A stretch of DNA of 64,000 nucleotides, from the NCBI RefSeq assembly GCF_902713615.1, contig NC_052153.1, positions 192,309,394-192,373,393 on the forward strand. Reading direction: 5' to 3'. A program made the position numbers and the translations under genes. Shown one piece after another: positions 9,260-62,184 of this stretch (within the stretch, counting starts at the first letter, position 1; every line of letters begins with the position of its first letter). Below the pieces are notes generated by a model, which was given only the letters and a program-made list of their open reading frames with translations, was not told the DNA's origin and ran no database searches. The DNA is from Scyliorhinus canicula (lineage: Eukaryota).

Positions 9260-9655
9260 GGCTTTCACTGAATCGTTGGACAATGACCGTGGCGGATGGT
9301 GTGAGTGTGGGGGAGGGGGGAACGGCTGTCCTGCCGTGTGGTTTCACCCACCCCCCACCCCCTAATCAGAGCATCAATGGCTCCGTGATGTGGCTCACCT
9401 CTGTCTCAGGGAAAGATAACATGGTTTTCCGATGTACATATCCTGGTACAGACCCTTCACAGGATGGACCGTGTGAGAGTGGGAAGCAGCGGGATGCTGG
9501 GAGCCGATTCCGATTCGTGGGCAATCTCAGCAACAATGATGCCTCAATAATGATGGAGCGACTGAGCCGGGCGGACAGCAATGTTTATCACTGCCGTGTG
9601 GAGCTCAACATCGACAAATTTCAAGTACCGCAAGGAACCGATCTGACAGTGAATG
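9260..9655 (+). CDS. Exon: V-set Ig domain 1, Siglec-15-like
   Basis: (CT)n tract + cacAG acceptor; donor G|gtgag; 396 bp, phase 1-1. WTMTV..V....[11 protein letters not shown]...W...VFRC...C...RFRFVGN..NDASI..ERL.RAD..VYHCRVE...G..LTV follows the Siglec-15 V-set pattern as I recall it, including the extra VFRC..C cysteine pair and the F-strand Arg. Confidence 0.92.
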
Positions 9656-12600
9656 GTGAGTATCGATGTTCAGGGTGGTACCTGTCCCCTACCCTCCACA
9701 TCATGTTCAGGGTGGTAGCTGTCCCTCCACATCATGTTCAGGGCGGTAGCTGTCCCCTACCCTCCACATCATGTTCAGGGTGGTAGCTGTCCCTCCACAT
9801 CATGTTCAGGGCGGTAGCTGTCCCTCCACATCATGTTCAGGGTGGTAGCTGTCCCTCCACATCATGTTCAGGGCGGTAGCTGTCCCTCCACATCATGTTC
9901 AGGGTGGTAGCTGTCCCTCCACATCATGTTCAGGGTGGTAGCTGTCCCTCCACATCATGTTCAGGGTGGTAGCTGTCCCCTGCCCTCCACATCATGTTCA
10001 GGGTGGTAGCTGTCCCTCCACATCATGTTCAGGGTAGTAGCTGCCCCCCGTGAATTCAACGAGTACTCACCCCCTCCCTCGCCCCCAGCCTGGTGTTGGA
10101 GCTCTCCTGTTTGCCTCCTGCCCAGCCTCCAAAATCGGAAACAATGGGATCTCTCCTGTAAAGGCATTGGCTGGAACCTCTTAAGCTCTCATTGGGTGAG
10201 CACATAGCGGGATGAGGGGGGGGGGGGGGCACTTCTGGAGTAATGGGGCTGGGGGAGGTGGCGTAATCCCTGAACCAATTCAAAGAACAATTTGATTTTG
10301 CAATGGCAGTCATGATGTGGCGATGCCTGCGTTGGACTGGGGTGAGCACGGTAAGAAGTCTTACAACACCAGGTTAAAGTCCAACAGGTTTGTTTCAAAC
10401 ACTGGCTTTCGGAGCACTGCTCCACCTGATTCACCTGATGAAGGAGCAGCGCTCCGAAAGCTCGTGTTTGAAACAAACCTGTTGGACTTTAACGTGGTTT
10501 TGTAAGACTTCTTATTTTGCAATGGGGGTGGGGTTTTGGATGAATGAATTTGACTGGGTTGAATGGGCCCTTGTGATCTATCTGACACCAGGGAGTTCAG
10601 GGTGAAAGATGGGTGTGTTGGTGCAGTCTGTGAGAGAGACGAGTGGAGCCTTGGAGTATCCATTCTGTTGTGAAGTTGAAAGATACACAACAAATGGAAT
10701 CTAAACATTCTGCAGACTGAAGGATTCATTCTGTTGTTTTTCCTTTCCTCAGTTGCCGGTGGAAATGAGTCAGTGGTGAGTGGCACTGAGGGAGCTTCGG
10801 TTACATTGCCCTGTACGTTCATACCCAGGAACTCCCACACCCTGACCACTGTTAGCTGGATGAGGAAGGAGACCTATGAACGGGTGGTCACATTTACACC
10901 CCAGCCAAATGGATTGTGGACAACTGTAAACGGTGAAAATCGATACGAGCTCATCGGGAACCCAAAGGAGGGAAACGCCTCAATCAGGATAAAGCAGCTG
11001 AGCGTGAATGATAGTCACACTTACCTGTGTCTGGTAGAGTACAAGGAGGAACGGTACCATTATCAATACCTGATTCAGACTGAGACACAGCTGCAGGTCA
11101 AACATGGTAAGAAATCATTGCCGCATTCCCCAGTGAATAGAGAGTTTGTGAATGTTGATGCTTTTTGTATTGGATATAGTTTGCAGGTGCTGATCTTTTT
11201 AGGTGCATTTTGATATTTGTATTGAAAGACATCGATGCACCCGTACCATTCAGTACAATCTGCAACCCAAAGTCACTCTGACATTTAGCTGGAAGACACA
11301 ACAGTATAAATGTCTCTTTTGATTGAAATGGAACTATTTTAATCCTTCATCCAGAGTAATCCGTCCGTTACCCCCAAGTGTCCATTTGACTGGGGGAGGC
11401 ATCACAGCCATGCTGGACCTGATGTAGCCCGGCTTTCACACGTGGATTATCAACAGGGAGCGATAACATTGAGGACCTCATGTGGGTTAGCACAGGATCT
11501 GGGAACTGCTCTGATACCAATATTGGAACTGGGGCTGGTTTAGCACACTGGGCTAAATCACTGGCTTTTAAAGCAGACCAAGCAGGCCAGCAGCATGGTT
11601 CGATTCCCGTACCAGCCTCCCCGGACAGGCGCCGGAATGTGGCGACTAGGGGCTTTTCACAGTAACTTCATTGAAGCCTACTCGTGACAATAAGCGATTT
11701 TCATTTTCATTTTTCATTTCATTCTTTGGAATATTGGTCTAGATGTATAATCTTTGCCACACAGTTAACCAATTGCTTCCTTGTTATAGAACCATAGAAT
11801 TCCTACAGTGCAGAAGGAGGCCATTCGGCCCATCGAGTTTGCACCGGCTCTTGGAAAGAGCACCCTATCCAAGCCCTCACCTCCACCCAATCCCCATAAC
11901 CCAGTAACCCCATCCAACACTAAGGGTAATTTTGGACACTAAGGGCAATTTAGCATGGCCAATCCACCTAACCTGCACATCTTTGGACTGTGGGAGGAAA
12001 CCGGAGCGCCCGGAGGAAACCCACGCACACACGGGGAGAACGTGCAGACTCCACACAGACAGTGACCCAAGTCAGGAATCGAACCTGGGACCCTGGCGCT
12101 GTGAAGCAACAGTGCTAACCAGGTTCCGCAGGGACCAGTGCTAAGACCCCAGCTATTCACAATATATATTAATGAATTCGATGAGGGAACTAATTGCAAT
12201 ATTGCCAAATTTGCAGACGGTAAGTAGCTGGGTGGGAGGCCGAGCTGTGAGGAGCATGTTGAGATGCTTCTCTGTGACTTGGCCAAGTTGAGTGAGTGGG
12301 CAAATGTTTGGCAAATGCAGCTAATGTGGATAAATGTGAGCCTGGGTGCCCTCGTACACCAGTCGCTGAAGATAAGCATGAAGATGCAGCAGGCGGTAAA
12401 GAAGGCAAATGGTAAGTTGGCCTTCATTGCGAGAGGATTCGAGTTCAGGAGCAGGGATGTGTTGCTGCAATTATACAGGGCCTTGGTGAGGCCACACCTG
12501 GAGTATTGTGTGCAGCTTTGGTCTCTTTATCTGAGGAAGGATGTTCCTGCGCTAGAGAGAGTGCAGAGAAGGTTTACCAGACTGATTTCTGGGATGGTGG

Positions 12601-27900: not shown

Positions 27901-30900
27901 GAAAAGGACCCATTAATCCCGACTCTTTGTTTCCTCTCTGCCAACCAATTTTCTATCCACCTCAATACATTTCCCCCAATCCCATGCTCTTTAATTTTGC
28001 GCAATAATCTCTTATGCGGGACTTTGTCAAACGCCTTCTGAAAGTCCAAATATACCACATCGACTGGCTCCCCCTTGTCAACTGTACTGGTTACATCTTC
28101 AAAGAATTCCAACAGGTTTGTCAAGCATGATTTTCCCTTCATCAATCCATGCTGACTCTGATGGATCCTGCCACTGCTTTCTAAATGTTCCGCTATAAAG
28201 TCCTTGATAATGGATCCAAGCATTTTCCCCACTACCGATGTTAGGCTTACTGGTCTATAATTCCCTGCTTTCTCTCTACCTCCCTTTTTGAATATTGGAG
28301 TGACATTAGCTACCCTCCAATCTGCAAGGACAATTCCAGAATCTATAGAATCACGGAAGATGATCACCAATGCATCCACTATTTCCAGAGCCACCTCCTT
28401 AAGCATTCTGGGATGCAGATTCTCCTTCTTCATCAATCCCTTCGTCCTTCTTTGCTGAATTCTAAACTGCTCCCAAGCCTCAGACCTATTATTTCTCTTG
28501 GCCAATCTGTATGCTTCTTCCTTGTATCGGATACTATTTCTAATTTCCTTTGCAAGCCATGGATTGGCTCTCTTACCTCCTTTGCTTTTGTGCCAGACAG
28601 GAATGAACAGTTGCTGTAGTTCCTCCATGCGTTCCTTGAACATTTGCCATTGCCAACCACTGTCATCCCTTTAAGTAACTATCCCCAATCTATCAAGGCC
28701 AACTCACACCTCATATCCTCATAGTTCCCTTTATTAAGATTCAGCACCCTAGTCTCCGAATCAACTACTTCACTCTCCATCTTGATAAACAATTCTACCA
28801 TGTTATGGTCGCTCATCCCCAAGGGGTCTCATACAGCCAGATTGGCAATGATTCCCTTCTCATTACACAGTACCCAGTCTAAGATGGCCTGCTCTCTAGT
28901 TGGTTCCTCCACATATTGGTCAAGAAAACCATCCCGTACACACTCCAGGAATTCCTCCTCTACGGCATTGTGGCTAATTTGATTTGCCCAATCTATGTGA
29001 AGGTTAAAATCGCCCATGATCACCGATATTCCCTTATTACATGCATCTCTAATTCCTTGTTTAATGCCATTCCCAACCTCACCAGTGCAGTTTGGGGGTC
29101 TATATATGACACCCAATGATGTTTTTTGCCCCTTGGTATTTCTCAACTCTACCCATACAGATTCCACATTGTCAGAGCTAATATCCTTTCTCACTATTGT
29201 GTTAACTTCCTCTTTAACCAGCAGTGCCACGTCACCACCTTTTCTTCTATGCCTGTCCTTCCTAAATACTGAGAACCCTGGAACATTCAGTTCCCATCCC
29301 TGTTCACCCTGCAACCATGTCTCTGTAATCCCAATTATATCATACCCATTTATATCTATCTGCGTGATTAGTTCATCCACTTTATTGCAAATACTCCGTG
29401 TATTAAGGCACAGAGCCTTTAAGTTTGTTTTATTCACATGGGTTTGTCACGGCTTTGGAAGCTGCTGCCTTCATCTTGTGGTGTGGGAAATGTAGCAGCC
29501 AATTTGCACACAGCGAAGTGCCACAAACAGCAATGGGTCCAGACCGGTTAACCTGGTTCATTCAGTGATTTTGGCTGAGGGGTGGCCAAGGTGCCAGGGA
29601 GGAAGCCTCTGTTCTCGGTTGAAATAGTGACATAGCGACCATGGAATTTTTCACATCATCTATCAGACTACCTAAGTTTAATGTCGCACTGGAAAGATAG
29701 CTCCTCTGGCAGTGCTTGCACTGCATCAGTGCCACACTAAAGCGTCAGCCTAGGTTTTGTGTTTGAAGTCTCTGGAGTGGGGGGGGGGGAGGGGAGGTTT
29801 GAAACCACCACCTTCCGACTTGGGGAGCAGCGGGGGGTGCGTACTACCCACTGAGCCACTGCTGAAATCTGAGGATAAATATGTCCGATCGCTGGCACTG
29901 TTTCACAGCTGTTTGTCTTACAGAACAAGGCGACTCCTGTACCTATGCTGAGATCGACAGGAGAACAGGTACGCTGCCCCTAATGGTTTTGTGCTGTTAT
30001 CTATTTTGTAACCCGAATTCCATCTCCAACCAACAGATCTTTTTGTTTTTGTTAAAGATGACAAGAGGTTCACAATCAATGCGTCAGAAGACCGTGAGTG
30101 AATGTTTCCTTTCACGTTGATTAAAAGTTGTAGTTTCAAATCTCTCCCGCTCCCCCCTATCTTTAAGAGCTGATTCCTTTGTTAGCCTGCCTCCCTGAGA
30201 AGGGAGCACTTGATCCCTCAATAGGCCACCATTTGGGGCGGTACGGTGGCGCAGTAGTTAGCACTGCTGCCTCACGGGCGCCGAGGACCCGGTTCGATCC
30301 CGTGTGGAGTTTGCGCATTCTCCCCGTGTTTGCGTGGGTCTCACCCCCTACGACCCAAAGATGTGCCGGGTAGCTAGATTGGCCACGCTAAATTGCGCCT
30401 TTATTGGGAAAAAAAAATAATAGACGACCATTCTACTCCCAGGTTTCATGCCTGTCCCACCGTCGGAAATTCTTCCCAAATGAAAATTCCCGATTCAGTT
30501 TTGAGTCGCCACGGACTCTCCCCGAAGGAGCTGCTTCACCGAGTGGATCCCAACCGACCCCACACCCTCAGCATGGACTTGTGAAGGGGAAGGTGATGTC
30601 TGATCAGCTTGAGTTAAAGCTTTGAGGAAGTAGCAAGGAGGGTCAATGGGGGTGGGGGGGGGTGGGGGGTGGTGGTATTTGTGGTTACGGGGATAGGGCG
30701 GGAGGGGGAGCTTGCTCGGGTGCTCAGTAAGGGGTATGGTGCAGCCTCAATGGGCTGAATAATAATAATAATCCTAATTGTCACAAGTAGGCTTACATTG
30801 ACACTGCAATGAAGTTACTGTGAAAATCCCCTCAGCGCCACATTCCGGCGCCTGTTCAGGTACACAGAGGGAGAATTCACAATGTCCAATTCACCCAACA

Positions 30901-39900: not shown

Positions 39901-42900
39901 AAGGAGTCGCCCTGTAGGCTAACAGCGCCAGGTTGAAATCCGAACCCGAGTCAGTAGCTTTGCACAACAGTCTTTTAACAATGTGGACCCCTTTTCAGCC
40001 TTCCCATTCGACTGGGGGTAACGGGGCCTTGAAGTGACGTGCGTAAAATTGTACTGCCGGGCAAAATCCGTCCACTCCAGACTGAAGAAGCACGGGCAAT
40101 TATCAGTCATGACTGTAAGTGAAATGCCATGATGGGCAAAGTTCTCTTTGCACGCCTTGGTGACTGTTGCTGATGTGAGGCCAGTCAGTCTGACCACCTC
40201 GGGGTAGTTAGAAAAATAGTCCACGAGTAGGACATAGTCTTGGCCCTTTGCATGAAAGAGATCAATGCCAACCTTGGTCCATGGGGACGATACCAGTTCA
40301 TGCGGCTGCAAAGCCTCTTTCGGCTGAGCCGGCTGGAACCGTTGGCACGTTGGGCAATTGAGGACCGTGTTGGCGATATCCTGGCTGATGCCTGGCCAAT
40401 ATACTGCCTCTCGGGCTCGACGGCGACACTTTTCGACCCCCAGGTGACCTTTGTGGATTTGGCCGAGGACCAGCTCTCGCGTGCTCTGTGGGATTACTAT
40501 CCTGTCCAGCTTCATTAGTATGCTGTCCACTACCGCCAGATCGTCTTTTATATTATAGAACTGTGGGCACTGCCCCTTTTGCCAACCATCCGTGAGATGG
40601 CGCATGACCCACTGGAGTAAAGGATCCCTGGCCGTCTCCTGACGAATCTGCACGAACCTTTCATCAGTGGCCGGAAAGTTGGATGCACAAAACTTCACCT
40701 GAGCGTCGATCTGAGAGATGAAGTCCGACTGCTCACACGGCGCGGTGATGGGTCTAGAGAGGGCGTCGGCCACAATGAGCTCCTTGCCCGGGGTGTAGAC
40801 CAGGTCGATATCGTAGCAGCGGAGTTTGAGGAGGATACGTTGTAGGCGTGGCATCATATAGAACATAGAACATAGAACACTACAGCGCAGTACGGGCCCT
40901 TCGGCCCTCGATGTTGCGCCGACCTGTGAAACCATCTGAAGCCTATCTGACCTACACTATTCCATTTTCATTCATATGTCTATCCAGTGACCACTTAAAT
41001 GCCCTTAAAGTTGGCGAGTCTACTACTATTGCAGGCAGGTCGTTCCACACCCCTACTACTCTCTAAGTAAAGAAACTGCCTCTGATATCTGTCCTATATC
41101 TATCACCCCTCAATTTAAAGCTATGTCCCCTCGTGTTGGTCATCACCATCCGAGGAAAAAGACTCTCACTGTCCACCCTATCTAACCCTCTGACTATCTT
41201 ATATGTCTCTATTAAGTCACCTCTCAGCCTTCTCCTCTCTAACGAAAACAACCTCAATTCCCTGAGCCTTTCCTCGTAAGACCTTCCCTCCATACCAGGC
41301 AACATCCTAGTAAATCTCCTCTGAACCCTTTCCAAAGCTTCCACATCCTTCCTATAATGTGGTGACCAGAACTGCACGCAGTACTCCAGGTGTGGCCGCA
41401 CCAGAGTTATGTACAGCTGCAGCATGACCTTGTGGTTCCGAAACTCAATCCCCCTGCTTATAAAGGCTAGCACACCATATGCCTTCTTAACAGCCCTATT
41501 AACCTGGGTGGCAACTTTCAGGGATTTATGTACCTGGATGCCGAGATCTCTCTGTTCATCTACACTACCAAGAATCTTGCCATTAGCCCAGTACTCTGCA
41601 TTCCTGTTACTCCTTCCAAAGTGAACCACCTCACACTTTTCCGCATTAAACTCCATCTGCCACCTCTCAGCCCAGCTCTGCAGCTTATCTATGTCCCTCT
41701 GTATCCTATAACATCCTTCAGCACTATCCACAACTCCACCGACCTTCGTGTCATCTGCAAATTTACTAACCCATCCTTCTACACCCTCTTCCAGGTCATT
41801 CCCGTAACAGCCTCCCCGAACAGGCGCCGGAATGTGGCGACTAGGGGCTTTTCACAGTAACTTCATTTGAAGCCTACTTGTGACAATAAGCGATTTTCAT
41901 TTCATTTTTCATTTTCATTTCATTTATAAAAATGACAAACAGCAGTGGCCCCAAAACAGATCCTTGCGGTACACCACTAGTAACTGAACTCCAGGATGAA
42001 CATTTGCCATCAACCACCACCCTCTGTCTTCTTTCAGCTCGCCAATTACTGATCCAAACCGCTAAATCACCTTCAATTCCATACTTCCTTATTTTATGCA
42101 ATAGCCTACCATTGAGGTCTTTCTAGATGATGTGAACCAATGGCCTGTGGTCCGTCTCGACCGTGAATTTAGGGAGTCCATGCACGTAATCATGGAATTT
42201 GTCAATCCCTGTGAGAAAGCCCAGGCATTCTTTTTCCATCTGAGCGTATTGTTGCTCAGTGGGTGTCATGGCTCTTGATGCATATGCGACTGGGGCCCAG
42301 GAGGAGGATCTGTCCCGCTGGAGACCCCAATGCCAGCCTGGCTCACGTCGGTGGAGATCTTTGTGTCCTTGGCAGGGTCGAAAAATGCCAGTACCGGGGC
42401 CTTGGTGAGTTTCGCCCTGAGCTCACGCCACTCTCGCTCATGAGCGGGGAGCCACTGGACGTCGGTAGTCTTTTTAAAAGATGGCGGAGAGCTGTGGTGT
42501 GTGATGCAAGGTTGGGGATAAACTTCCCAAGGACGTTGACCATCCCTAGGAAGCGGAGGACGGCCATCTTGTCCTCCGGGGTCTTCATGGCGTTGATCGC
42601 CGACACCATGTCTGCATCTGGCTGCACACCGAACTGCGAAATATGGTCGCTGAGGAACTTTAGTTCTGATTGACCGAACGAGCATTTGGCTCTGTTGAGT
42701 CGGAGGCCATGCTCGTGGATCTTATGGAACACTTGTTTGAGGCGATCGACGTGCACCTGAGGAGTTGTGGACCAAATAATGATATCATCAACGAACACCC
42801 GCATCCCCTCGATGCCCTCCATCACTTGCTCCATTATGTGGTGGAACACCTCCGAGGCGGAGATGATGCCAAAGGGCATTCGGTTGTAACAGTAACGACC

Positions 42901-45900
42901 AAATGTGGTGTTAAATTTGCACAACTTTCGATTGGATGCGTCCAGCTGTATTTGCCAAAACCCCTTGAAGGCATCCAGCTTCGTGAAAAACTTGGCATGA
43001 GCCATCTCGCTGGTTCGCTCTTCTCGTTTAGGGGTAGGGTAGTGTTCCCTCATGATGTTACGGTTCAAATCTTTGGGGTCGATACAAATGAGAAGTTCCC
43101 CTGACGGTTTCTTGACACAAACCATGGAGCTAACCCAGTCCGTGGGTTCCGTGACCTAAGAAATGACGATCTGGTCCTGGAGGTCTTGCAGCTGCTGCTT
43201 GAGGCGGTCCTTAAGGGGCGCCGGCACCCGACGTGGTGCATGGACCACAGGGGTGGCTTTCAGCTTCAACAGGATCTTGTATCGGTAAGGGAGTGTGCCC
43301 ATACCTTCGAAGACGCTGTGGTATTGTGCTATGATGTCATCGAGTTGGGTTTGGAAATTGACATCTGGCGAGGCCGTTGCCTCAGCGGGCGACACGGAGT
43401 GAACCCGCTGCACAAGATTCAGGAGTTTGAGGGCCTGAGCACCGAGCAGGGAAGCTCTGTTGGGCCTGAGCACCGAGCAGGGAAGCTCTGTTGGGCCTGA
43501 GCACCGAGCAGGGAAGCTCTGTTGGGCCTGAGCACCGAGCAGGGAAGCTCTGTTGGACCCGACAATTTCAAAACGCAGGGTTGCTTTTGAAGTACGATGG
43601 GACACGGCAAGCTGGCATGAGCCACTGGCAGCAATGGCATTGCCATTGTAGTTGAGGAGCTGGCAGGCCGGTGGAAGAATGCTTGCCTTGACACGGATGG
43701 TGTCAGACTTTGAAATGAGGTTTGCTGAAGCGCCGGTGTCCAGCCTGAAGCGTATGCGAGCCTTGTTGACCATAAGGGTGGCACACCACTCATCGTCCGG
43801 ATCAATGCTCATCACTGGGAGTTGTTTCGCCTTCTTGGCGGAAAGCATCGTATGCTTGGTGATGATGCCCACCCGGAATGGGGATGTGAGATCCTCGGTG
43901 TCGGGATCTGGAGCCATGTCGGAGTCGGAGTCTGCAACGGGTATCTGTACTGACCGGACGCTCCTGCGCTGCGGCTGGGATCGCTGTGTGTTGGGCAGTT
44001 GAGCAGATCTCCACAGGGCTGCGTAGTGGCCAAGCTTGCTACACTGGAGACAGCGTCGAGATTTCGCGGGACATTGGCGCTTAAGTGGGCGGAGCCACAG
44101 TTGTTGCATGTCATGGCGCCGAGGTCAGGACGCTCCATGCGCCAACGTGCATGCGCAGTGCGGTCAAACGATGTGCACACCTGCGCAGTTTGGTCGTCGG
44201 CCTCGCCGTCCCCTTGATCATTGCGCACATGCGCAGGAGCCCGGGAAAAGAGCGCAAAATGGCCGCCATCATCCAGACTCAGGCCCTCTTCGCATCGTGG
44301 GGGCCTTGCCGCGCCGTCTCTGCCGCCTTGATATGGGAGTATCGGTTAGTAGCGTGCTCGTGGAGGATGCAGGTCTCGATGGCAATGGTAAGGGTGAGCT
44401 GCTTAACTTTAAGGAGCTGCTGGCGAAGGGGATCGGAGTGGACCCCAAAAACAATCTGGTCCTGGATCATGGAATCGGAAGTGGAGCGTAGTTGCAGGAC
44501 TGCGCGAGGATACGGAGATGGGTTAAGAAGGACTGAAAAGGTTCATCCTTACCCTGAAGCCTCTGCTGGAACACATAGCGTTCAAAGCTCTCATTGACTT
44601 TGATGTCACAGTGGCTGTCAAACTTCAGCAGGACTGTTTTAAACTTTGTCTTGTCCTCGCCTTCAGCAAAGGTGAGGGAATTAAAGGTGTGGATAGCGTG
44701 GTCCCCGGCTGTAGAGAGGAAGAGAGCGATCTTCCTGGCATCCGATGCGGCTTCGAGGTCAGTGGCTTCCAGATATAGCTGGAACTTCTGCTTGAAAATC
44801 TTCCAGTTAGCACTGAGGTTGCCGGCGATGCGGAGCTGCGGGAGGGCGGACGCTGTCCATGTTACCGGATGGCTGATCGCTGGTCAAAGGCAGATTATCT
44901 CAAGGTAGGTCCGTCAAACTCGAGCATGACTCACTGGTACCATGATGTGTTGGGTAAGCTGGGTCTGCGAGGACTGTGTTTACTGCAGCAGTGAGAGAGA
45001 CAGGCTTCCAACACTTGAAGAAATGCAACTCGGTTTTATTGAACTCTTAACTATCATACATACTTTAACTGTGGGTTGACACTATGCTGACTTGACTGGA
45101 GACCTGAGGCTAACCTGACCAGACTATCTGACTACTACATGGTGTATGTTCTAGTTGTTGCTCACGAGCTCTGACTGTCCCAGAGGCTGCATCCCAAGAG
45201 AGCGGGAAAACTAGTGCCCTCTGGCTTTATAGTGGCTGTGTCCTGTCTGGTGATTGGCTGCTGTGTTCTGTGTGTTCACTGGTCATCCTGTGTGTCAATC
45301 GCTGCCTGTCTGTGCACCATCATATACCTGTGTGTATATTATGACAGACTGCATCGCTGTTTTTCGGTCAGAGGACAGAGAGTGGGCCGAATGGCCCCCT
45401 CTGTGCTGTTAATCGTTCTGTGTTTCTACGTACAGCTCCCCCTGCAGTGTCTCATCAATACTACAAGGGCAGGTGCAGCAGGTGCTGAACCAAGAAGATA
45501 GCTCCCTATGTATTAGGCTGCACGACTCATTAACACACGCTGTTTCTCTGGTGGTTTAATGTTTCTGGGATTTAAACAGTCCCTGCTGTTGCAGAGAAAC
45601 ATGTGCTATATAAAGGAATGGACGTGTCAGGGTTTTAGACCAAATTGAGATTTATGATTATGTGGTGATGAAGTTGGTTAACGCCAGTAAGCAGAGAGTG
45701 GTGGTGAGTGGTTGTATTTCCGCTGGAGGGAAATGCGCATCACTGTTGAAGCTGCTGGTTTTATTCTACGTCAGTGACCTGGACTCGAGCGCCCAGGGAA
45801 TCATTTCAAAGTTTGCAGAAGACACAAAACTCCAAAATCTAGAAAACAGCGAGGCCTAGGGGGGCATGGACTGGCGAAATGGGCAGCAGGGTAGGGCGGC

Positions 45901-46136
45901 ACGGTAGCACAGTTGCTTCACAGCGCCAGGGTCCCAGGTTCAATTCCCGGCTTGGGTCACTGTCTGTGCGGAGTCTGCACGTTCTCCCCGTGCCTGCCTG
46001 GGTTTCCTCCGGATGCTGCGGTTTCCTCCCACAGGTCCCGAAAGACGTGCTTGTTAGGTGGATTAGACATTCTGAATTCCCTCTCTGTGTACCCGAACAG
46101 GCTTTGTTGAGAACCTTGGACACAATGCCAGCAGAG

Positions 46137-46171
<35 letters not shown>

Positions 46172-49100
46172 AGCGTTAACTATCTGCATACTTCAGAGGC
46201 TGGAAGGGGTTATTGATGGCCTCAGAGAATCATTTATGCTCACCAAGCTTTTTGCTAGTCGGGGTGGGGGGTGGGGGGGGGGGGGGGGGGGGGGGGATGG
46301 CGTCACAAAACACCCAGCAAGGTTACATTTGATCTCTTGCAGTTCACAATCAGTAAGCTGCAGTTGTCAAAAACAGAACTACTGAAATGTGTGTGGAGGC
46401 AGCGCCGGCCCTAGGGTTGCTGGCGCCCCGGGCCAGCTGAACTTCGGCGCCCTTGGGGGGGGGGGGGGGGGGCCGAGAGGGGGGGAGGCCGAGAGGGGGG
46501 GGGGGCCGAGAGGGGGGGGGGGGGCACGATTGAGGGGGGGGGACCAGGAAGAGAAGGCGTGAGGGCGAGGAGAGGGGGGGGGGGGGCCCAGGAGAGGGGG
46601 GGGGGGGGTGCCGAGAGGTGGGGACCGCGGAGGGGGGGGGACCGAGGAGGGGGAGGGGGGGCGGCGCGTCGAGGGGCGGGGGAGGCCGAGAGGTGGGGGG
46701 GACCGAGAGGCGGGGTGCGAGGGGAGGGGGGGGGGCGGTGGGCGGGCGAGCGGAGGGGGAGGGGGGCTGCGAGGGGGGGAGGTTGGCCCAAGAGGGGGGG
46801 GGGGTGGGGGGAGGGATGGGGGCGGGGCCTGAGGGGGAGGGCGGGCGGACGGAAGGGGGACGGAGGAGGGGCGGGGTGACGAAGGGGACGGATGGGGCGG
46901 AAAGGGCCCGACTGGGCCGCAGGGAGGGCCACCGCGAAGCGCTGGTTGGCACCGGCCCAACTGCGCATGCGCGGGAGACTACCGAGTCTCTGGCGCCCCC
47001 TAGCACATGGCCGCCAAGGGAGCATTGACCGAGTGCGGTTACCTTGGGCGGCCCTGTGTGGAGGGGAAAGGTCCAGATATGTATCACTTTGGGAGGACAG
47101 GGGAAACACCCAAACCCCCAGTCCAGTGTCTTGTCCATGACGGGCAAGCTTGTGTAGAATCGAGCCTGATGGATGCTTCTTAGCCATTTGTGAGGTTGCT
47201 GCCGGAGGAGGTGGTGGAAGCAGGGACCATAGTGACGTTTTCAGGGGCAGTTTGCAGTTGTACAAAACTCTGGTGCGGCCGCATTTGGAGTATTGCGTGC
47301 AGTTCTGGTCGCCACATTATAGGAAGGATGTGGAAGCATTGGAAAGGGTACAGAGGAGATTTACAAGGATGTTGCCTGGTATGGAGGGAAGATCATATGA
47401 GGAAAGGCTGAAGGACATGAGGCTGTTTTCGTTAGAGAGAAGACGGTTAAGACGGTGACTTAATGAGGCATACAAGGTGATCAGAGGATTAGATAGGGTG
47501 GACAGTGAGAGCCTTTTTCTCGGATGGTGATGTCTAGCACGAGGGGGACATAGCTTTAAATTAAGGGGAGATAGATATAGGACAGATGTCAGAGGTAGGT
47601 TCTTTACTCAGAGAGTAGTAAGGGCGTTGGAATGCCCTGCCTGCAACAGTAGTGGACTCGCCAACCCTAACGCATTCAAATGGTCATTGGATAGGCATAT
47701 GGACGATAAGGGAATAGTGTAGAGGGACTTTAGAGGGGTTTCACAGGACGGCGCAACATCGAGGGCCCGAAGGGCCTGTACTGCGCTGTAATGTTCTATG
47801 TTCTATGTTCTTTGTTCTATCTTAACAAATACATGAATAGGATGGGAATAGAGGGATATGGACCAGGAAGTGTAGAAGATTTCTGTTTAGATGGGCAGCA
47901 TGGTCGGCACAGGCTTGGAGGGCCGAAGGGCCTGTTCCTGTGCTGTACTTTTCTTTGTTCCTTGTTCATAAAGTGTCCAATTACATTTTTCACGGACATT
48001 TGATGAGCAGACAAATGTCTCGAACTGATGTCTCGCGAGTCATGAAAGTCCAGTTAACTCTGAGGGAGACCCCTATTCGACTCTCGATGTTTAACTTTGT
48101 TTCTGCCCCCACAGATCCTGCCAGATGCCTGTGTTCCTCCAGCATTTTTCTTTGTTTAAAATCAAACCCTTCCTTTTCCAGGAAGGTGTATTCATTTCTG
48201 CGGCCGATTGACCCATTGCCAGCTGCCGAGAGGGAACCATGGGTATTTGAGGAACAACTACACCTCAGGCCACCTCCTTCGTGCCAATATTTACTGAATT
48301 GGCAGCACCAGTGCACCTGGGCTGTGAATTCCAGTTCGTTCACACCTCCATCCCCCCTCCCCCCCCCCACCACCTCCTACATAACCTCCATGTCCTAGTC
48401 CCCCGCCCAGATATTCCCTTATTTATCTCCTTAACCCTATTCCCCCTCCTTGCCCCTACCCCCCCTTTACACCAATCTCTCCTCCTTCACTCCATCCCCC
48501 ATCCCCCCTCCTTCACCCCATCCTCCTCCCCTCATCCTTCATCCCATTCTTCCTCCATTCACCCCATCCCCCTCCTTCACCCCATCCCCCCCCCCTCCTT
48601 CATCCCACCCTCCTCCCTCACACCCCCATTCCCTCATCCTTCACACCCACCCCCACCTCCCCTTCACCCCCATCCCCCCTCCTTTCACCAATCCCCCCTA
48701 CTTACCCAATGCCCCCTTCCCTCCACCACCCCATCCCCATTTTTTTTTTTTTTTCATCTTCCATCCCCATCACCCCTACTTGAGGCCCCCTTCCCCCTCC
48801 TTTACCCCTCCCCCACCCTTCCTTTACCCCATCACCCCTTCCTTACACCACATCCCCCCTCCTTCACCCCGATCTCCCCTCCTTTACTCCCATCCCCCCT
48901 CCTTCCCCTCCATATCCCTCTCCTGCATCCCTCCCTCCCCCCCCCCCCCCCTTTACCTCCACGTCCCCATCACCCCCGACTATCACCCCCTCCTTCACCA
49001 CCAGCCCGGAGCACCCGGAGGAAACCCACGCAGACACGGGGAGAAGGTGCAAACTCCCCACAGGCAGTCACCCGCGGCCGGAAATGAACCCGGGTGCCTG

Positions 49101-49724
49101 GCGCTGAGAGGCAGCAGTGCTAAGCACTGTGCTGCCGTGCCGCCCGAGAATTCTTCATTCCTCCAGTTCCGGTCTCTTGTGTACCCCCCTGCCCTGATCC
49201 CCATCGCAACACCATTGACGGCCGCACCCGTAGGCTGGGAACTCCGGGATCTTTCCCGAAAGCCCTCCTCCTCCTGGCCTCTCTTCACCCCCAATCACCA
49301 CGACCTGATCAGCTTGACCAAGTGTTTGATCACCTGCCCTAACATCACCTTCTGTGGCTTGGTGTTGAATTCTGTCCGATCTTGTGGCAGTGATGATTCA
49401 CAACGCTGAAGGTGTGATATAAATACAAAGGTGCTGTTGTGCTGAAAGATTATTGGAATCTCGAGTCAGCAGGCCGGAGGAGCAAAACAGTTTCAGAGTC
49501 GATACCGTTTGTGTTACAGCTCAGCCGGATTCCTGTATGTATGCCAGCGTGGTGATTGGCAGCAACAGAAAAGGTAACCCCTTATAAACCGGTCTTCAAC
49601 ATATTTCAGATATTTTTCCATTTATTGATATTTGGCAATGTTTTGAATTCATCCTCCCGTCTAACGGAAGCTTCTCCTTCAGACCAGGGTGGCAAGCATC
49701 TCCGCACCGCTGATTCGGAAGAGA
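9260..49724 (+). CDS. Gene A (partial, spliced): Siglec-15-like V-V-TM immunoglobulin-superfamily receptor with two cytoplasmic ITIM-like motifs; exons 9260-9655, 10753-11106, 14840-14944, 19975-20014, 21306-21367, 29924-29968, 30058-30093, 49520-49573, 49683-49724
   Basis: All nine exons have AG acceptors with pyrimidine-rich tracts and GT donors. Phases chain without a stop (1-1,1-1,1-1,1-2,2-1,1-1,1-1,1-1,1-1), giving 378 codons: V1-V2[128 protein letters not shown]. Leader and terminal exons not found; no transcript evidence. Confidence 0.75.
9665..10045 (+). repeat. Intronic minisatellite, 31-bp core CCCTCCACATCATGTTCAGGGTGGTAGCTGT (about 11 units)
   Basis: Direct tandem units with 31/36/37-bp variants, starting about 10 bp after the V1 donor. 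Confidence 0.97.
10352..10514. repeat. About 163-bp inverted-repeat hairpin, probably Penelope-like-element derived
   Basis: Arms TAAGAAGTCTTACAA..GCTCC and GGAGC..TGTAAGACTTCTTA are about 70 bp with about 5 mismatches; second copy at 52627-52787. Confidence 0.85.
10432..10466 (+). ncRNA. Minimal type I hammerhead ribozyme motif
   Basis: CAC-CUGAUGA-A-GGAGC-AGC-GCUCC-GAA-AGCU-C-GUG: stem I CAC/GUG, core CUGANGA, 5-bp stem II, GAAA, palindromic stem III AGCU, UC cleavage site. Activity untested. Confidence 0.6.
10753..11106 (+). CDS. Exon: V-set Ig domain 2
   Basis: ttcctttcctcAG acceptor; G|gtaag donor; 354 bp, phase 1-1. [24 protein letters not shown]...DSHTYLC..TQLQV is a canonical V-set C-W-DxxxYxC framework. 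Confidence 0.93.
11531..11723 (+). mobile_element. Short tRNA-derived SINE without V-domain, sharing the GTGACAATAA tail (representative copy)
   Basis: GGGGCTGGTTTAGCAC..GGTTCGATTCCC head; (TTTCA)n end. Others at about 16525-16683, 41800-41905, 53803-53995, 58658-58815. Confidence 0.85.
12130..13680 (+). mobile_element. CR1 3' fragment interrupted by a GC-rich non-coding repeat (about 12860-13510)
   Basis: [18 protein letters not shown]; CR1 3' UTR resumes at about 13510; counterpart at about 54400-55950. Confidence 0.75.
14420..14722 (+). mobile_element. V-SINE with alternative tail (..GGCGACTAGGGG..GTGACAATAAAG), representative copy
   Basis: Same head and V-domain, different 3' half. Others at about 17550-17855-, 20515-20810-, 30760-31060-, 45895-46100+, 56700-57005+, 59682-59990-. 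Confidence 0.88.
14840..14944 (+). CDS. Exon: transmembrane segment (not in ORF track)
   Basis: gttttacAG acceptor; G|gtgggt donor; 105 bp, phase 1-1. [22 protein letters not shown] followed by an RKK stop-transfer motif; no charged residue in the core. Confidence 0.9.
15415..17365 (-). mobile_element. Degenerate CR1 with SINE insertions (copy B counterpart at about 57695-59495)
   Basis: RT and C-terminal motifs in several frames. Confidence 0.85.
19975..20014 (+). CDS. Exon: cytoplasmic 1 ([13 protein letters not shown])
   Basis: ttttatctctttAG acceptor; AAG|gtagga donor; 40 bp, phase 1-2; open in frame; conserved in copy B. Confidence 0.7.
21306..21367 (+). CDS. Exon: cytoplasmic 2 ([21 protein letters not shown])
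   Basis: gtatttctcAG acceptor; CAG|gtaatg donor; 62 bp, phase 2-1, which restores the phase needed between its neighbours. Confidence 0.68.
21480..25574 (+). mobile_element. Near full-length CR1 LINE, frameshifted
   Basis: ORF1 zinc finger/coiled coil ([16 protein letters not shown]) and SGNH esterase (GDSIVRG..HIGTND); ORF2 APE (VAITETW, GDFN) and RT (QGSVLGP); ttctatgttctatg tail. Confidence 0.95.
26141..26510 (+). mobile_element. Solo LTR, 370 bp, 5-bp TSD CCACT
   Basis: TGTGG...CAACA ends; CCACT at 26136-26140 and 26511-26515; TATA-like TTAAATA at about 26224; AATAAA at about 26436. Confidence 0.82.
26860..29440 (-). mobile_element. CR1 LINE ORF2 (APE+RT), degenerate
   Basis: [12 protein letters not shown] in 28829-29437; 405-aa RT frame with [20 protein letters not shown]. 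Confidence 0.94.
29924..29968 (+). CDS. Exon: tyrosine-motif exon 1 ([15 protein letters not shown])
   Basis: gtttgtcttacAG acceptor; CAG|gtacgc donor; 45 bp, phase 1-1; contains YAEI. Confidence 0.75.
30058..30093 (+). CDS. Exon: spacer exon 1 ([12 protein letters not shown])
   Basis: tttttgtttttgttaaAG acceptor; |gtgagt donor; 36 bp, phase 1-1; 89-bp intron after the Tyr exon; resembles 49683-49724. Confidence 0.68.
31864..35007 (-). mobile_element. CR1 LINE with 749-aa uninterrupted RT frame; TSD GAAGA; inserted in a Rex1 fragment
   Basis: ORF 31943-34192; APE in 34243-34807; GAAGA at 31859-31863 and 35008-35012; the Rex1 sequence is contiguous across the insertion. Confidence 0.95.
35056..38260 (+). 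mobile_element. L1-clade LINE, 5' part (ORF1, APE, start of RT), 3'-truncated
   Basis: ORF1 coiled coil + [21 protein letters not shown]; APE ITWNI..LQETH..GGDFN..SRID..SDH; [14 protein letters not shown]. Confidence 0.92.
38261..38634 (-). mobile_element. Rex1/Babar LINE fragment
   Basis: [36 protein letters not shown]. Confidence 0.88.
38820..39223 (-). repeat. Gypsy 3' LTR
   Basis: 404 bp; preceded on the minus strand by a polypurine tract at about 39224-39243. Confidence 0.93.
40858..42110 (-). mobile_element. 5'-truncated CR1 LINE nested in Gypsy pol, itself interrupted by a SINE 3' half (about 41800-41905)
   Basis: RT C-terminus [26 protein letters not shown]; (TTCTATG)n tail at about 40860; Gypsy reading resumes on both sides. 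Confidence 0.92.
44934..44942 (-). promoter_or_regulatory. Primer-binding site TGGTACCAG (tRNA-Leu(UAA)-like)
   Basis: Abuts the 5' LTR; complementary to a tRNA 3' end ...CUGGUACCA. The tRNA assignment is from memory. Confidence 0.65.
44943..45346 (-). repeat. Gypsy 5' LTR
   Basis: TG...CA on the minus strand, 404 bp; about 21 substitutions versus the other LTR by my count. Confidence 0.93.
46139..46169. repeat. (GT)n microsatellite
   Basis: About 15 units. Confidence 0.95.
46400..47056. mobile_element. GC-rich non-autonomous hAT-type DNA transposon (MITE), 8-bp TSD TGTGGAGG
   Basis: Imperfect TIRs CAGCGCCGGCCC / GGGCGGCCCTG; TGTGGAGG at 46392-46399 and 47057-47064; poly-G interior. Partial copies at about 49927-50210 (3' half) and 62762-63070 (5' half). 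Confidence 0.88.
47230..47960 (+). mobile_element. CR1 3' fragments (two tails)
   Basis: [28 protein letters not shown]; ttctatg and ttctttg tails. Confidence 0.88.
48350..49000. repeat. C/T-rich low-complexity tract
   Basis: About 650 bp of CCCCATCC/CCTCCTTCA-like units, almost free of G. Confidence 0.9.
49520..49573 (+). CDS. Exon: tyrosine-motif exon 2 ([18 protein letters not shown])
   Basis: gtttgtgttacAG acceptor (nearly identical to that of 29924); AAG|gtaacc donor; 54 bp, phase 1-1; contains YASV. Confidence 0.75.
49683..49724 (+). CDS. Exon: spacer exon 2 ([14 protein letters not shown])
   Basis: cttctccttcAG acceptor; |gtaagt donor; 42 bp, phase 1-1; 109-bp intron after Tyr exon 2. 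Confidence 0.7.
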
Positions 49725-50449: not shown

Positions 50450-50549
50450 NNNNNNNNNNNNNNNNNNNNNNNNNNNNNNNNNNNNNNNNNNNNNNNNNNN
50501 NNNNNNNNNNNNNNNNNNNNNNNNNNNNNNNNNNNNNNNNNNNNNNNNN
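50450..50549. other. Assembly gap (100 N)
   Basis: Exactly 100 Ns, typical of an unsized scaffold join. Confidence 0.99.
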
Positions 50550-52325
50550 ATGTTCAGGGTGGTAGCTGTCCCCTGCCCTCCACATCATGTTCAGGGTGGT
50601 AGCTGTCCCTCCACATCATGTTCAGGGTGGGAGCTGTCCCTCCACATCATGTTCAGGGTGGTAGCTGTCCCCTGCCCTCCACATCATGTTCAGGGTGGTA
50701 GCTGTCCCTCCACATCATGTTCAGGGTGGTAGCTGTCCCTCCACATCATGTTCAGGGTGGTAGCTGTCCCCTGCCCTCCACATCATGTTCAGGGTGGTAT
50801 CTGTCCCTACCCTCCACATCATGTTCAGGGTGGTAGCTGTCCCCTGCCCTCCACATCATGTTCAGGGTGGTAGCTGTCCCTCCACATCATGTTCAGGGTG
50901 GTATCTGTCCCCTACCCTCCACATCATGTTCAGGGTGGGAGCTGTCCCCTACCCTCCACATCATGTTCAGGGTGGGAGCTGTCCCTCCACATCATGTTCA
51001 GGGTGGTAGCTGTCCCTCCACATCATGTTCAGGGTGGTAGCTGTCCCTCCACATCATGTTCAGGGTAGTAGCTGTCCCTCCACATCATGTTCAGGGTGGG
51101 AGCTGTCCCTCCACATCATGTTCAGGGTGGGAGCTGTCCCTCCACATCATGTTCAGGGTGGTAGCTGTCCCCTACCCTCCACATCACGTTCAGGGTGGTA
51201 GCTGTCCCTCCACATCATGTTCAGGGTGGTAGCTGACCCTCCACATCATGTTCAGGGTGGTAGCTGTCCCCTACCCTCCACATCACGTTCAGGGTGGTAG
51301 CTGCCCCTCCACATCATGTTCAGGGTGGTAGCTGTCCCCTACCCTCCACATCATGTTCAGGGTGGTAGCTGTCCCCTGCCCTCCACATCATGTTCAGGGT
51401 GGGAGCTGTCCCCTGCCCACATCATGTTCAGGGTGGAAGCTGTCCCCTGCCCTCCACATCATGTTCAGGGTGGTAGCTGTCCCTCCACATCATGTTCAGG
51501 GTGGTAGCTGTCGCTCCACATCATGTTCAGGGTGGTAGCTGTCCCCTGCCCTCCACATCATGTTCAGGGTGGTAGCTGTCCCTCCACATCATGTTCAGGG
51601 TGGTAGCTGTCCCCTGCCCTCCACATCATGTTCAGGGTGGTAGCTGTCCCTCCACATCATGTTCAGGGTGGTAGCTGTCCCCTACCCTCCACATCATGTT
51701 CAGGGTGGTAGCTGTCCCCTGCCCTCCACATCATGTTCAGGGTGGTAGCTGTCCCTCCACATCATGTTCAGGGTGGTAGCTGTCCCTCCACATCATGTTC
51801 AGGGTGGTAGCTGTCCCCTGCCCTCCACATCATGTTCAGGGTGGTAGCTGTCCCTACCCTCCACATCATGTTCAGGGTGGTAGCTGTCCCCTGCCCACAT
51901 CATGTTCAGGGTGGTAGCTGTCCCCTGCCCTCCACATCATGTTCAGGGTGGTAGCTGTCCCCTACCCTCCACATCATGTTCAGGGTGGTAGCTGTCCCTC
52001 CACATCATGTTCAGGGTGGTAGCTGTCCCCTACCCTCCACATCATGTTCAGGGTGGTAGCTGTCCCTCCACATCATGTTCAGGGTGGTAGCTGTCCCTCC
52101 ACATCATGTTCAGGGTGGTAGCTGTTCCTCCACATCATGTTCAGGGTGGTAGCTGTCCCTCCACATCATGTTCAGGGCGGTAGCTGTCCCTCCACATCAT
52201 GTTCAGGGTGGTAGCTGTCCCCTACCCTCCACATCATGTACAGGGTGGTAGCTGTCCCTCCACATCATGTTCAGGGTGGTAGCTGTCCCTGCCCTCCACA
52301 TCATGTTCAGGGTGGTAGCTGTCCC
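50550..52325 (+). repeat. Same minisatellite, expanded (more than 50 units, cut by the gap)
   Basis: Same core and variants over about 1.78 kb. Confidence 0.97.
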
Positions 52326-53025: not shown

Positions 53026-53379
53026 TTGCCGGTGGAAATGAGTCAGTGGTGAGTGGCACTGAGGGAGCTTCGGTTACATTACCCTGTACGTTCATACCCA
53101 GGAACTCCCACACCCTGACCACTGTTAGCTGGATGAGGAAGGAGACCTATGAACGGGTGGTCACATTTACACCCCAGCCAAATGGATTGTGGACAACTGT
53201 AAACGGTGAAAATCGATACGAGCTCATCGGGAACCCAAAGGAGGGAAACGCCTCAATCAGGATAAAGCAGCTGAGCATGAATGATAGTCACACTTACCTG
53301 TGTCTGGTAGAGTACAAGGAGGAACGGGACCATTATCAATACCTGATCCAGACTGAGACACAGCTGCAGGTCAAACATG
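53026..53379 (+). CDS. Copy B exon: V-set Ig domain 2
   Basis: Same splice sites and length as 10753-11106; 4 substitutions seen (two synonymous; V to M in LSVND; Y to D in EERYH). Confidence 0.9.
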
Positions 53380-62144: not shown

Positions 62145-62184
62145 GGTTTTCATGGCTAATGGGGTGCACCAGATCTTCAGAAAG
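62145..62184 (+). CDS. Copy B exon: cytoplasmic 1 ([13 protein letters not shown])
   Basis: Matches 19975-20014 except tgt to ttt (Cys to Phe); splice sites intact. Confidence 0.68.

Follow-up and report, generated by a model that had tools for sequence, protein, structure and literature searches.

In the genome of Scyliorhinus canicula, a stretch of 64,000 nucleotides (hereafter, the window) carries, at positions 9260-49724, nine of the at least 12 coding exons of LOC119970771. We consider it probable, at roughly 0.6, that this gene is a transcribed type I receptor and the inhibitory-type member of an elasmobranch paired-receptor family in the Siglec-15 lineage, in which sialic-acid recognition and phosphatase recruitment are predicted steps. 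The gene is already registered in RefSeq as an "uncharacterized protein" (models XP_038661853-55), while its function we infer. About 90 relatives have likewise been deposited, so that "hidden", the word used in the original prediction, does not apply. The family exists only as automatic annotation under about 10 inconsistent names and appears to be unstudied.

The SIGLEC15 of bony vertebrates consists of a V-set and a C2-set domain, binds sialic acid through an Arg in the F strand (YxCRVE), and signals through DAP12 via a Lys in its transmembrane (TM) helix. The shark gene was predicted to keep the first of these domains and to invert the signalling, with a V-V ectodomain, a neutral TM, and two ITIM-like motifs.

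Gene structure and the duplicated locus

All nine exons lie on the + strand. The Siglec-15-like V-set domain V1 (9260..9655; phase 1-1), with the motifs RFRFVGN and YHCRVE, is followed by a second V-set exon, V2 (10753..11106; phase 1-1), which has neither the F-strand Arg nor the extra Cys pair, and by the TM exon (14840..14944), which encodes a short stalk, an uncharged transmembrane helix, and an RKKG stop-transfer sequence and matches the TM of the relatives P0011, P0012, and P0164. Next come two juxtamembrane exons, JM1 (19975..20014), aligned to P0011 and P0012 and identical in RefSeq, and JM2 (21306..21367), then a first Tyr-motif exon (29924..29968; YAEI, with Cys at -2) and a spacer exon (30058..30093); JM2 and the latter two were placed by alignment to relatives, splice sites, and RefSeq. 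The second Tyr-motif exon (49520..49573; YASV, again with Cys at -2) is supported by its splice sites and RefSeq, and the last in-window spacer exon (49683..49724) ends at the donor A/gtaagt without a stop codon. The Mustelus model P0011 was discarded as the sole exon guide because it spans 967 kb.

Every exon is flanked by a polypyrimidine-AG acceptor and a GT donor, the phases are compatible, and the joined frame of 377 aa contains no stop; both Ig exons pass the Pfam V-set model (V1 1e-11, V2 3e-17). The joined protein is 100% identical to XP_038661855.1 across the eight exons used by that isoform. The TM exon is omitted from RefSeq isoform X3 and is additionally included in XP_038661853/54 (441 aa; isoforms X1/X2). 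The nine predicted exons thus stand as drawn, and they are spread among transposons as described, with LINE and LTR retrotransposon ORFs in the introns.

Within the window the model lacks a leader and a start codon at one end and a stop codon at the other. The RefSeq leader MDVLCILLSAALLPVTAWGYR was searched for in the window and is absent; the sole phase-compatible leader candidate there (9142-9196; MMYLFSLCNRLSILSLAV) has a weak donor and no RNA support and was rejected. RefSeq adds a third Tyr cassette (CTYASV) and a terminal canonical ITIM (VVYAAV) from exons beyond the window, neither of which was found in 49725-50449 or elsewhere on the + strand. Neither an alternative Lys-TM exon nor a C2 exon occurs in the window. 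Read-through past V2 (11107-11210) was considered as a decayed Lys-TM and dismissed, since RNA depth is zero there and the top match of a Lys-TM query is the neutral TM exon. A weak V-like match on the minus strand (4742-5107; E 0.016) has no intact Ig frame.

Transcription is shown for the V1, V2, and TM exons. RNA contigs cover the V1 and V2 exons exclusively, with a break at the 9260 acceptor, and in four runs position 9655 is joined to 10753/4; the contigs depart from the genome exactly at 11106, the V2 donor. All seven sampled words of the TM exon occur in at least nine RNA runs. In other words, of the eight junctions for which RNA confirmation had been proposed, V1-V2 is seen in RNA and the V2 donor is used, while the junctions from the TM to the Tyr exons are predicted from RefSeq and from an identical exon order in more than 40 relatives.

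The original prediction overlooked a 42-kb duplication and an assembly gap, which make the 3' end of the gene provisional. A gap of 100 N (50450..50549) lies at the junction of duplication units A and B, which are 97.5-98% identical over 11 kb. In unit A, a minisatellite in intron 1 (9692..10047; 31 bp, 11 copies; TRF and self-BLAST) starts about 7-37 nt after the V1 donor; in copy B it is expanded to at least 57 copies and runs straight from the gap (50550..52325). There follow on the + strand a copy B V2 exon (53026..53379) that departs from its copy A counterpart by 4 nt and 2 aa and has intact splice sites, a TM exon (57124..57228) identical to that of copy A, and a JM1 exon (62145..62184) with a single nucleotide difference that changes Cys to Phe; the similarity between A and B stops at 62761. 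It should be mentioned that the canonical-ITIM exons of RefSeq may belong to unit B.

It is possible, though we do not favour it, that the locus is partly artefactual, reflecting a collapsed or expanded haplotype or else wrongly joined sequence at the gap, and that the 441-aa, three-cassette RefSeq protein is a chimera of two copies; in that case the real protein would carry only two cassettes, followed by a terminal exon of its own that falls within the gap. The near identity of A and B and the start of B at the gap agree with this, as do the 112 kb spanned by the RefSeq gene, against 40.5 kb from V1 to ADSEE, and the third cassette, which is one residue apart from the second of A, a divergence like that between A and B. 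Relatives, moreover, have two cassette-like motifs and a terminal ITIM, and the 967-kb Mustelus model indicates that such chimeric models occur. On the contrary, splicing from 49724 to a YASV-type exon is phase-compatible and gives exactly the Thr codon of RefSeq, so that an internal duplication within one gene fits equally well, and the RNA carries more than two sequence variants, so that real paralogues exist.

Ectodomain and the elasmobranch family

The Siglec-15 likeness of V1 was borne out by sequence and by fold. Its best PDB sequence match is 7ZOZ, human Siglec-15 (8e-13; the next match is at 2e-7), and a Foldseek search with an AF2 model (pLDDT 82) again returns 7ZOZ first (E 4e-10, TM 0.76/0.79), ranks 2-24 being occupied entirely by chains of sialoadhesin, CD33, Siglec-7, or Siglec-10. 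In the alignment with human Siglec-15 (Q6ZMC9), YHCRVE of V1 falls on YFC-R143-VE, and the cysteines of both disulfides are kept: the B-F pair C64-C142 and the unusual C95-C104 pair that ties the C'-C'' loop to C' (FRC...GPC in V1, FRC95...LC104 in human). Among the ligand-contact residues described for human Siglec-15 (W44, Y154, Y87, and R143; PMC10264397), the A-strand Trp W44 is also kept (NRWTM), a Phe stands at the position of Y154 as the G-strand aromatic, and a Gly at that of Y87. The C'-C'' loop is longer than in human and is modelled at low confidence.

Domain 2 is V-type, as predicted: in addition to the Pfam result, its PDB alignments are to V domains, and it forms a separate V lineage in the tree. 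LOC119970771 therefore differs from SIGLEC15, whose second domain is C2-set. It differs likewise from the CD33-related Siglecs, which are V-C2(n), whereas the shark ectodomain is V-V by both Pfam and the two-domain model, its V lineage is Siglec-15-like, and its motifs are unlike LHYASL/TEYSEV; this part of the original prediction holds. The two-domain model (V1-V2) matches V-V proteins by structure, and its top Foldseek match is JAML, which is also a tandem V-V protein and the second-best PDB sequence match for V1. JAML, however, has no ITIM tail, its V1 is without the Arg and Trp of the Siglec pocket, and it is only 16-17% identical to the shark model in the structural alignment.

The V-V arrangement is not peculiar to LOC119970771; it is the norm throughout the family, which comprises about 90 annotated proteins from sharks and rays, each of them V-V. 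The TM is neutral in 48 of the members retrieved, and 22 combine a Lys TM with a short tail. In the same genome, the partner genes LOC119970764/65 carry the TM Lys, and LOC119970764 (P0179) is 81% identical to our gene over leader-V1-V2, with the TM ...CIPLGVKLLPLLVMW. The family is thus paired, and the predicted inversion of signalling is not a simple reversal. In both the V1 and V2 subtrees, ectodomains group by species and not by signalling type (this clustering is seen for Scyliorhinus, Heterodontus, Hemiscyllium, Leucoraja, and Hypanus), and the V1 tree implies at least 12 changes of TM type. In these respects the family resembles the CD33-related pairs Siglec-5/14 and Siglec-11/16, in which near-identical ectodomains are joined to an ITIM tail in one member and to a charged, adaptor-coupled TM in the other; in such pairs and other paired receptors, too, ectodomains cluster by species and the lectin Arg is often lost in some members.

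A further cartilaginous-fish comparison is the MDIR receptors of skates, likewise activating and inhibitory IgSF receptors that form a multigene family and vary in their number of domains, which have been described as CD300/TREM/pIgR-like (PMC3031540). No MDIR-named or Raja eglanteria protein occurs among 90 hits of a shark query and 88 of a skate query, in a collection whose MDIR content is unconfirmed. MDIR identity thus finds no support in these matches, and the skate receptors are probably a different family.

Across the family, each Cys of the extra disulfide is at least 97% conserved, and the F-strand Arg is present in 73 of 91 V1 domains. Of 41 neutral-TM members from sharks and rays, 39 retain the Arg, whereas 11 of 23 Lys-TM relatives have lost it; the Trp and the G-strand aromatic are retained as well. 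The association of Arg loss with TM type (Fisher p = 9e-5) is a lead only, the independent-pairs test being underpowered (5 pairs, median p 0.5).

These counts bear on whether V1 might have the Siglec fold and a ligand other than sialic acid, either a protein or another glycan, in which case the inhibitory-receptor part of our reading would stand. Y87 is not conserved, the long C'-C'' loop is poorly modelled, and the losses among Lys-TM relatives indicate that the Arg position is dispensable for folding. In a passage of PMC7226832 that cites Angata 2007, the cloned zebrafish Siglec-15 is described as showing no strong glycan binding, so the Arg alone does not guarantee lectin activity. We nevertheless regard a non-sialic ligand as unlikely, because the Arg, Trp, and aromatic residue persist in neutral-TM members and the best structural neighbours of V1 are all sialic-acid-binding V domains.

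Transmembrane segment, tail, and relatives outside the sharks

The TM of LOC119970771 has no charged residue, as predicted, and therefore no Lys for DAP10/DAP12; SIGLEC15, by comparison, has a short tail and couples to DAP12, whereas the shark tail is long and carries Tyr motifs. Both predicted motifs, YAEI and YASV, are present in that tail. Their full forms, CTYAEI and CMYASV, have Cys at -2 and fall outside [ILVS]xYxx[ILV], so that they are ITIM-like without being canonical. In most of the neutral-TM members retrieved, the tail shows CTYA[ED]I and CTYAS[ILV] and closes with V[IT]YAAV, and the canonical C-terminal ITIM of RefSeq and relatives strengthens the inhibitory reading. Some Siglecs, CD22 among them, are partly endocytic, and the Tyr motifs here might likewise serve mainly as sorting or endocytosis signals of an endocytic or scavenging lectin-like receptor and not as docking sites for SHP phosphatases: YAEI, YASV, and YAAV each conform to YxxPhi, those in the window are without the ITIM residue at -2, and the motifs recur as cassettes. 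This is improbable, however, given a canonical terminal ITIM conserved in sharks, rays, and caecilians, canonical proximal motifs in some members (ILYAEI, SFYVEI, LTYASI), and the coexistence of ITIM and Lys-TM forms, a hallmark of inhibitory/activating pairs.

Teleosts ("siglec15, like"), paddlefish, and caecilians have ITIM-tailed relatives of Siglec-15 too, so that the "inverted logic" is old and not exclusive to sharks. These relatives, seemingly unstudied and represented by database models only, share with the shark family a Siglec-15-type V domain with Y-x-C-R-V-E, a neutral TM, an R-K-K/E-G juxtamembrane sequence, CTYADI/CMYTEI-type motifs, and a VTYAAV-type terminal ITIM; the tail of the caecilian "Siglec-15 X2" aligns with the shark tail, and the layout is common to both. 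They differ in having a single V followed by C2 (in the caecilian and coelacanth examples examined) and in forming a clade apart from the shark family.

The V-domain tree gave a divided answer. A constrained tree that groups the family V1 with the Siglec-15 V is 6.8 lnL better (p-AU 0.77), while in the free tree the family V1 clade takes no firm place with respect to Siglec-15. Domain 1 of the V-V-C2 proteins of the sawfish (Pristis), Mobula, and Heptranchias, which carry a Siglec-15-type C2, is sister to Siglec-15 (support 83). Orthology of LOC119970771 to SIGLEC15 is not established, these chondrichthyan proteins sitting closer in the tree.

Proposed signalling and its meaning

As an inhibitory-type paired receptor, LOC119970771 would carry, after its leader, the two V domains V1 and V2, an uncharged TM, and a tail with Tyr motifs. 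V1 would engage sialylated glycans through its F-strand Arg. Once the ligand is engaged, Src-family kinases would phosphorylate the tail tyrosines (CTYAEI and CMYASV, with CTYASV and VVYAAV in RefSeq), and the phosphorylated tail would bring in SHP-1/2-type phosphatases, which would dampen activation. Their Lys-TM counterparts would signal through a DAP12-like adaptor in response to the same or similar ligands.

Siglec-15, at present a target of immunotherapy, is regarded as an activating lectin that couples to DAP12 and is conserved throughout the vertebrates. The Lys-TM of the shark family (PLGVKLLPLLVMW) resembles the TM of a bird Siglec-15 (PLGIKLLILLVMV). I­t may be speculated, with some reserve, that Siglec-15 did not start out as a solitary activating lectin but is the one remaining member of an old inhibitory/activating pair of the gnathostomes. 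A V-V branch of that pair would have expanded in elasmobranchs into a large set of paired receptors, and mammals would have retained the Lys-TM gene alone. If so, the ancestral ectodomain was possibly V-V-C2, as in the sawfish, Mobula, and Heptranchias, and the ITIM members would keep the sialic-acid Arg, reading "self", as their Lys-TM partners repeatedly lose it.

Cartilaginous fish thus possess, in the Siglec-15 lineage, a large inhibitory/activating paired family whose V-V ectodomain is unusual. With this family and the shared ITIM tails, the question of how Siglec-15 signalling arose can be put to the test, and comparative immunology gains a candidate for a sialic-acid "self" checkpoint that may have operated at the base of the jawed vertebrates.

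Gene structure, annotation and transcription

On the plus strand, the open frames at 9283-9786 and 10734-11213 pass the V-set threshold of Pfam (1e-11 and 3e-17, respectively). With relatives as guides and splice sites read in the sequence, nine plus-strand exons were placed: the first and second immunoglobulin V-set exons, V1 (9260-9655) and V2 (10753-11106); a transmembrane (TM) exon of 105 nt, or 35 codons (14840-14944); the JM1 (19975-20014) and JM2 (21306-21367) exons; the YAEI exon (29924-29968) and a first spacer (30058-30093); and the YASV exon (49520-49573) and a second spacer (49683-49724). A pyrimidine tract and AG precede every exon, all the donors begin with GT (in exon order gtgagt, gtaaga, gtgggt, gtagga, gtaatg, gtacgc, gtgagt, gtaacc, and gtaagt), and the joined exons agree in phase and encode 377 residues with no stop. 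The nine phase-compatible exons of the original prediction are therefore correct in detail, but the model is incomplete: within the window it lacks both a leader and a start codon, and after ...ADSEE it runs into a donor before any stop codon. The introns hold LINE-type open reading frames (endonuclease and reverse transcriptase) and LTR-type ones (integrase and reverse transcriptase).

The protein encoded by the nine exons shows 100% identity to RefSeq XP_038661855.1 apart from the TM exon, which this isoform, X3, skips and which XP_038661853/54 (isoforms X1/X2, 441 aa) contain. The gene, LOC119970771, is therefore already annotated, and the receptor is not "hidden", as had been proposed. RefSeq adds a leader (MDVLCILLSAALLPVTAWGYR) and, after ADSEE, a third cassette (32 residues), and its protein ends in NVVYAAVAGRV*, a canonical ITIM; the leader, the third cassette, and the terminal ITIM were not found in the window. 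The RefSeq gene spans 112 kb in GCA_902713615.2, whereas the stretch between V1 and ADSEE in the window covers 40.5 kb. The TM skipping in isoform X3 (105 nt, 14840-14944) is in frame and retains the leader and both V domains with no membrane anchor, so that this isoform would possibly be soluble; likewise, the models of several relatives have no TM.

Transcription of V1 and V2 was assessed with Logan contigs from four RNA runs aligned to 9001-12024. The RNA depth is confined to 9260-9655 and 10754-11106 and is zero in intron 1 and directly after 11106, and the splice joint from 9655 to 10753/4 is present in 4/4 runs. The V2 donor is used, because the contigs leave the genome exactly at 11106 and continue for another 173-318 letters; similarly, two contigs break at 9260 with ~28 upstream letters unaligned, which indicates that the acceptor at 9260 is used and that the leader exon is at another location. 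Each of the seven words sampled from the TM exon occurs in nine or more RNA runs, drawn from five studies, and the linkage of the TM to the tail rests on RefSeq and conservation. LOC119970771 is confirmed as a real, expressed, and already annotated gene.

Several other stretches should be mentioned. At the 3' end of the leader intron, 46 nt (9214-9259) read in the V1 frame give 16 residues that align with signal peptides from related ray and shark proteins, and a weaker match of this kind lies at 8703-8759. A TGA stands at 9202, the stretch has no ATG, and the RNA enters at 9260 from a leader outside the window; 9214-9259 may be the remnant of a leader that was once contiguous. Upstream of the gene, the minus strand at 4742-5107 gives a weak V2-like tblastn match (E 0.016), with no intact Ig reading frame visible there. 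The last two tail exons are flanked by similar copies of a GC-rich, low-complexity stretch (46350-47265 and 49740-50290) with long open reading frames, Pro-rich on the minus strand or Gly/Arg-rich on the plus strand, which is probably a repeat element.

Tandem duplication and the 3' end

Self-comparison of the window revealed a duplication that the original prediction did not cover: unit A (9662-20591) and unit B (51936-62761) are 97.5-98% identical, with a period of ~42.27 kb. The V2, TM, and JM1 exons of unit B are intact, with four, zero, and one nucleotide differences from unit A, respectively, and no counterpart of V1 is seen for unit B in the window. Unit B starts at a 100-N gap (50450-50549), within a 31-bp minisatellite; this repeat comprises 11 copies in unit A, directly after the V1 donor (9692-10047), and no fewer than 57 in unit B (50550-52325), where it adjoins the gap and is probably the reason for the assembly break.

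The RefSeq third cassette is one residue (Met to Thr) from the YASV cassette of unit A, which on its sequence is an A/B-like divergence, and splicing from 49724 to a YASV-type acceptor yields exactly the Thr codon of RefSeq. Two readings can be offered: the whole gene was duplicated in tandem, with the junction hidden in the gap and RefSeq fusing A with the tail of B, or the duplication is internal to a single 112-kb gene. On the first reading, the gap would contain the terminal exon of A together with the leader and V1 of B; on the second, the duplicated part would extend from V2 to the second spacer.

In V2, the contigs of RNA runs X1, X2, and X6 (names distinct from those of the RefSeq isoforms) combine letters of copies A and B in a mosaic. 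The RNA also contains one or more additional variants: a 1043-nt contig of run X2 (9285-11106) differs from the window at 29 positions; two of its 11 V2 differences are copy-B letters, and 15 of its 17 V1 differences change an amino acid and cluster from the B-C loop to the C' strand, with YHCRVE retained. This contig is a transcribed third paralogue or a divergent allele.

V domains and an elasmobranch paired-receptor family

Among proteins of solved structure, the best relative of V1 by sequence is human Siglec-15 (7ZOZ, 8e-13), followed by JAML (2e-7) and CD33 (6e-6). V1 modelled by itself with AlphaFold (pLDDT 82) has the same top match in Foldseek (E 4e-10, TM 0.76/0.79, 34% identity), and the next 23 matches (ranks 2 to 24) are without exception V-domain chains of Siglecs, namely sialoadhesin, CD33, Siglec-7, and Siglec-10. 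The structure of Siglec-15 has a C64-C142 bridge, an unusual C95-C104 bridge, R143, and the contacts W44, Y87, and Y154 (PMC10264397). V1 shares the four cysteines of these bridges, R143 (YHCRVE), and W44 (NRWTM), so that the predicted F-strand Arg and extra cysteine pair are indeed kept, whereas it differs at Y154 (Phe) and Y87 (Gly). Domain 2 is V-type, as had also been predicted: V2 is a generic V-set domain, with TIM-2, pIgR, CD276, and Siglec-15 D1 all at ~1e-8, it lacks the F-strand Arg and the extra cysteine pair, and a two-domain model (pLDDT 87) is closest to the tandem V-V proteins JAML, scFvs, and pIgR. No C2 exon was found in the window.

Searches returned ~90 shark and ray relatives, whose names include "uncharacterized", "Siglec-15", "Siglec-12", "Siglec-10", "pIgR-like", "JAML-like", "A33 antigen-like", "sialoadhesin-like", "HAVCR1-like", and "CD33-like". 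All are built from V-V units, some as V-V-V-V. A neutral TM (FKIY..LLILLL..RKKGG) is present in 48 of the 95 proteins tabulated, and the tail of most of these bears CTYA[ED]I, CTYAS[ILV], and, at its end, V[IT]YAAV; a Lys TM (CIPLG[LV]K..LLVMW) with a short tail is present in 22. These counts include a few neutral-TM proteins and one Lys-TM protein from outside the family, which are Siglec-15 relatives of bony vertebrates or sawfish. The window has no Lys-TM exon, and the top window match of a Lys-TM query is the neutral TM exon (52% identity), so the two look like versions of one exon. In S. canicula itself, LOC119970764, which has a Lys TM, is 81% identical to LOC119970771 over the leader, V1, and V2. 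It should be mentioned that the model of one relative, P0011 (Mustelus asterias LOC144495190), extends over 967 kb, overlaps seven other called genes, and was almost certainly stitched from several paralogues; gene models of this family therefore need caution.

In a tree of 110 V domains, V1-type and V2-type domains split with support of 96, and each family clade has support of 99. Within both clades, inhibitory and activating members cluster by species and not by signalling type, which is the pattern of paired receptors. The F-strand Arg is retained in 39/41 neutral-TM and 12/23 Lys-TM members (Fisher p = 9e-5), with replacements that vary by lineage (C, H/Y, S, G, and K). This apparent loss is a lead rather than a result, because a phylogenetically independent test, although in the same direction, has only five usable pairs and is underpowered.

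Proposed function and place in the Siglec-15 lineage

From the observed architecture, expression, fold, key residues, and paired family, we infer, with a probability of roughly 0.6, an inhibitory receptor: V1 would bind sialylated ligands through the F-strand Arg, the tail tyrosines, chiefly the canonical terminal ITIM, would recruit SHP-type phosphatases, and the Lys-TM partners would signal via a DAP12-like adaptor. The observation made in the original prediction thus stands, and its interpretation is partly supported. Against the inhibitory reading, both in-window Tyr motifs have Cys at -2, and the canonical ITIM lies outside the window and may be that of unit B; a rival view gives the Tyr motifs an endocytic YxxPhi role. 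Against the sialic-acid reading, Y87 is lost in V1 and zebrafish Siglec-15 showed no strong glycan binding (PMC7226832), and the V1 ligand may instead be non-sialic. A third rival is that the 3' end is partly an assembly or annotation artefact.

The family V1-V2 pair also occurs with the C2 domain of bony-vertebrate Siglec-15. The "Siglec-15/12" proteins of sawfish, Mobula, and Heptranchias (P0225, P0045, and P0029) are V-V-C2, and the C2 of the sawfish protein clearly corresponds to that of coelacanth and bird Siglec-15. Their membrane and tail parts are of Lys, neutral, or ITIM type (a Lys TM in Mobula, ITIM-like motifs in Heptranchias), and they may represent an ancestral architecture. Their domain 1 is sister to the bony-vertebrate Siglec-15 V domain (support 83). 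Forcing these two and the family V1 into one clade changes the likelihood by +6.8 (p-AU 0.77), and the free tree gives the family no firm position.

The TM of a bird Siglec-15 (PLGIKLLILLVMV) resembles the family Lys TM, the caecilian "Siglec-15 isoform X2" proteins have a juxtamembrane and tail layout in common with the family (RRKEGSLLCW ... DSCTYADI ... EVTYAAV), and the teleost "siglec15, like" and paddlefish "Siglec-15 X2" have neutral TMs and ITIM-like tails. The proposed inversion of signalling logic is therefore real relative to mammalian Siglec-15, but it is no shark novelty. A study of fish Siglecs dealt with teleosts only and treated Siglec-15 as activating (PMC7226832), and the skate MDIRs, described as CD300/TREM/pIgR-like (PMC3031540), were absent among the family-search matches; we found no literature on an elasmobranch V-V family or an ITIM-tailed Siglec-15 branch. 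The V-V paired receptors of elasmobranchs, to which LOC119970771 belongs, form a hitherto unstudied family within the Siglec-15 lineage, and the ITIM-tailed relatives in caecilians, teleosts, and paddlefish indicate that an ITIM-tailed branch of this lineage is widespread outside the amniotes.
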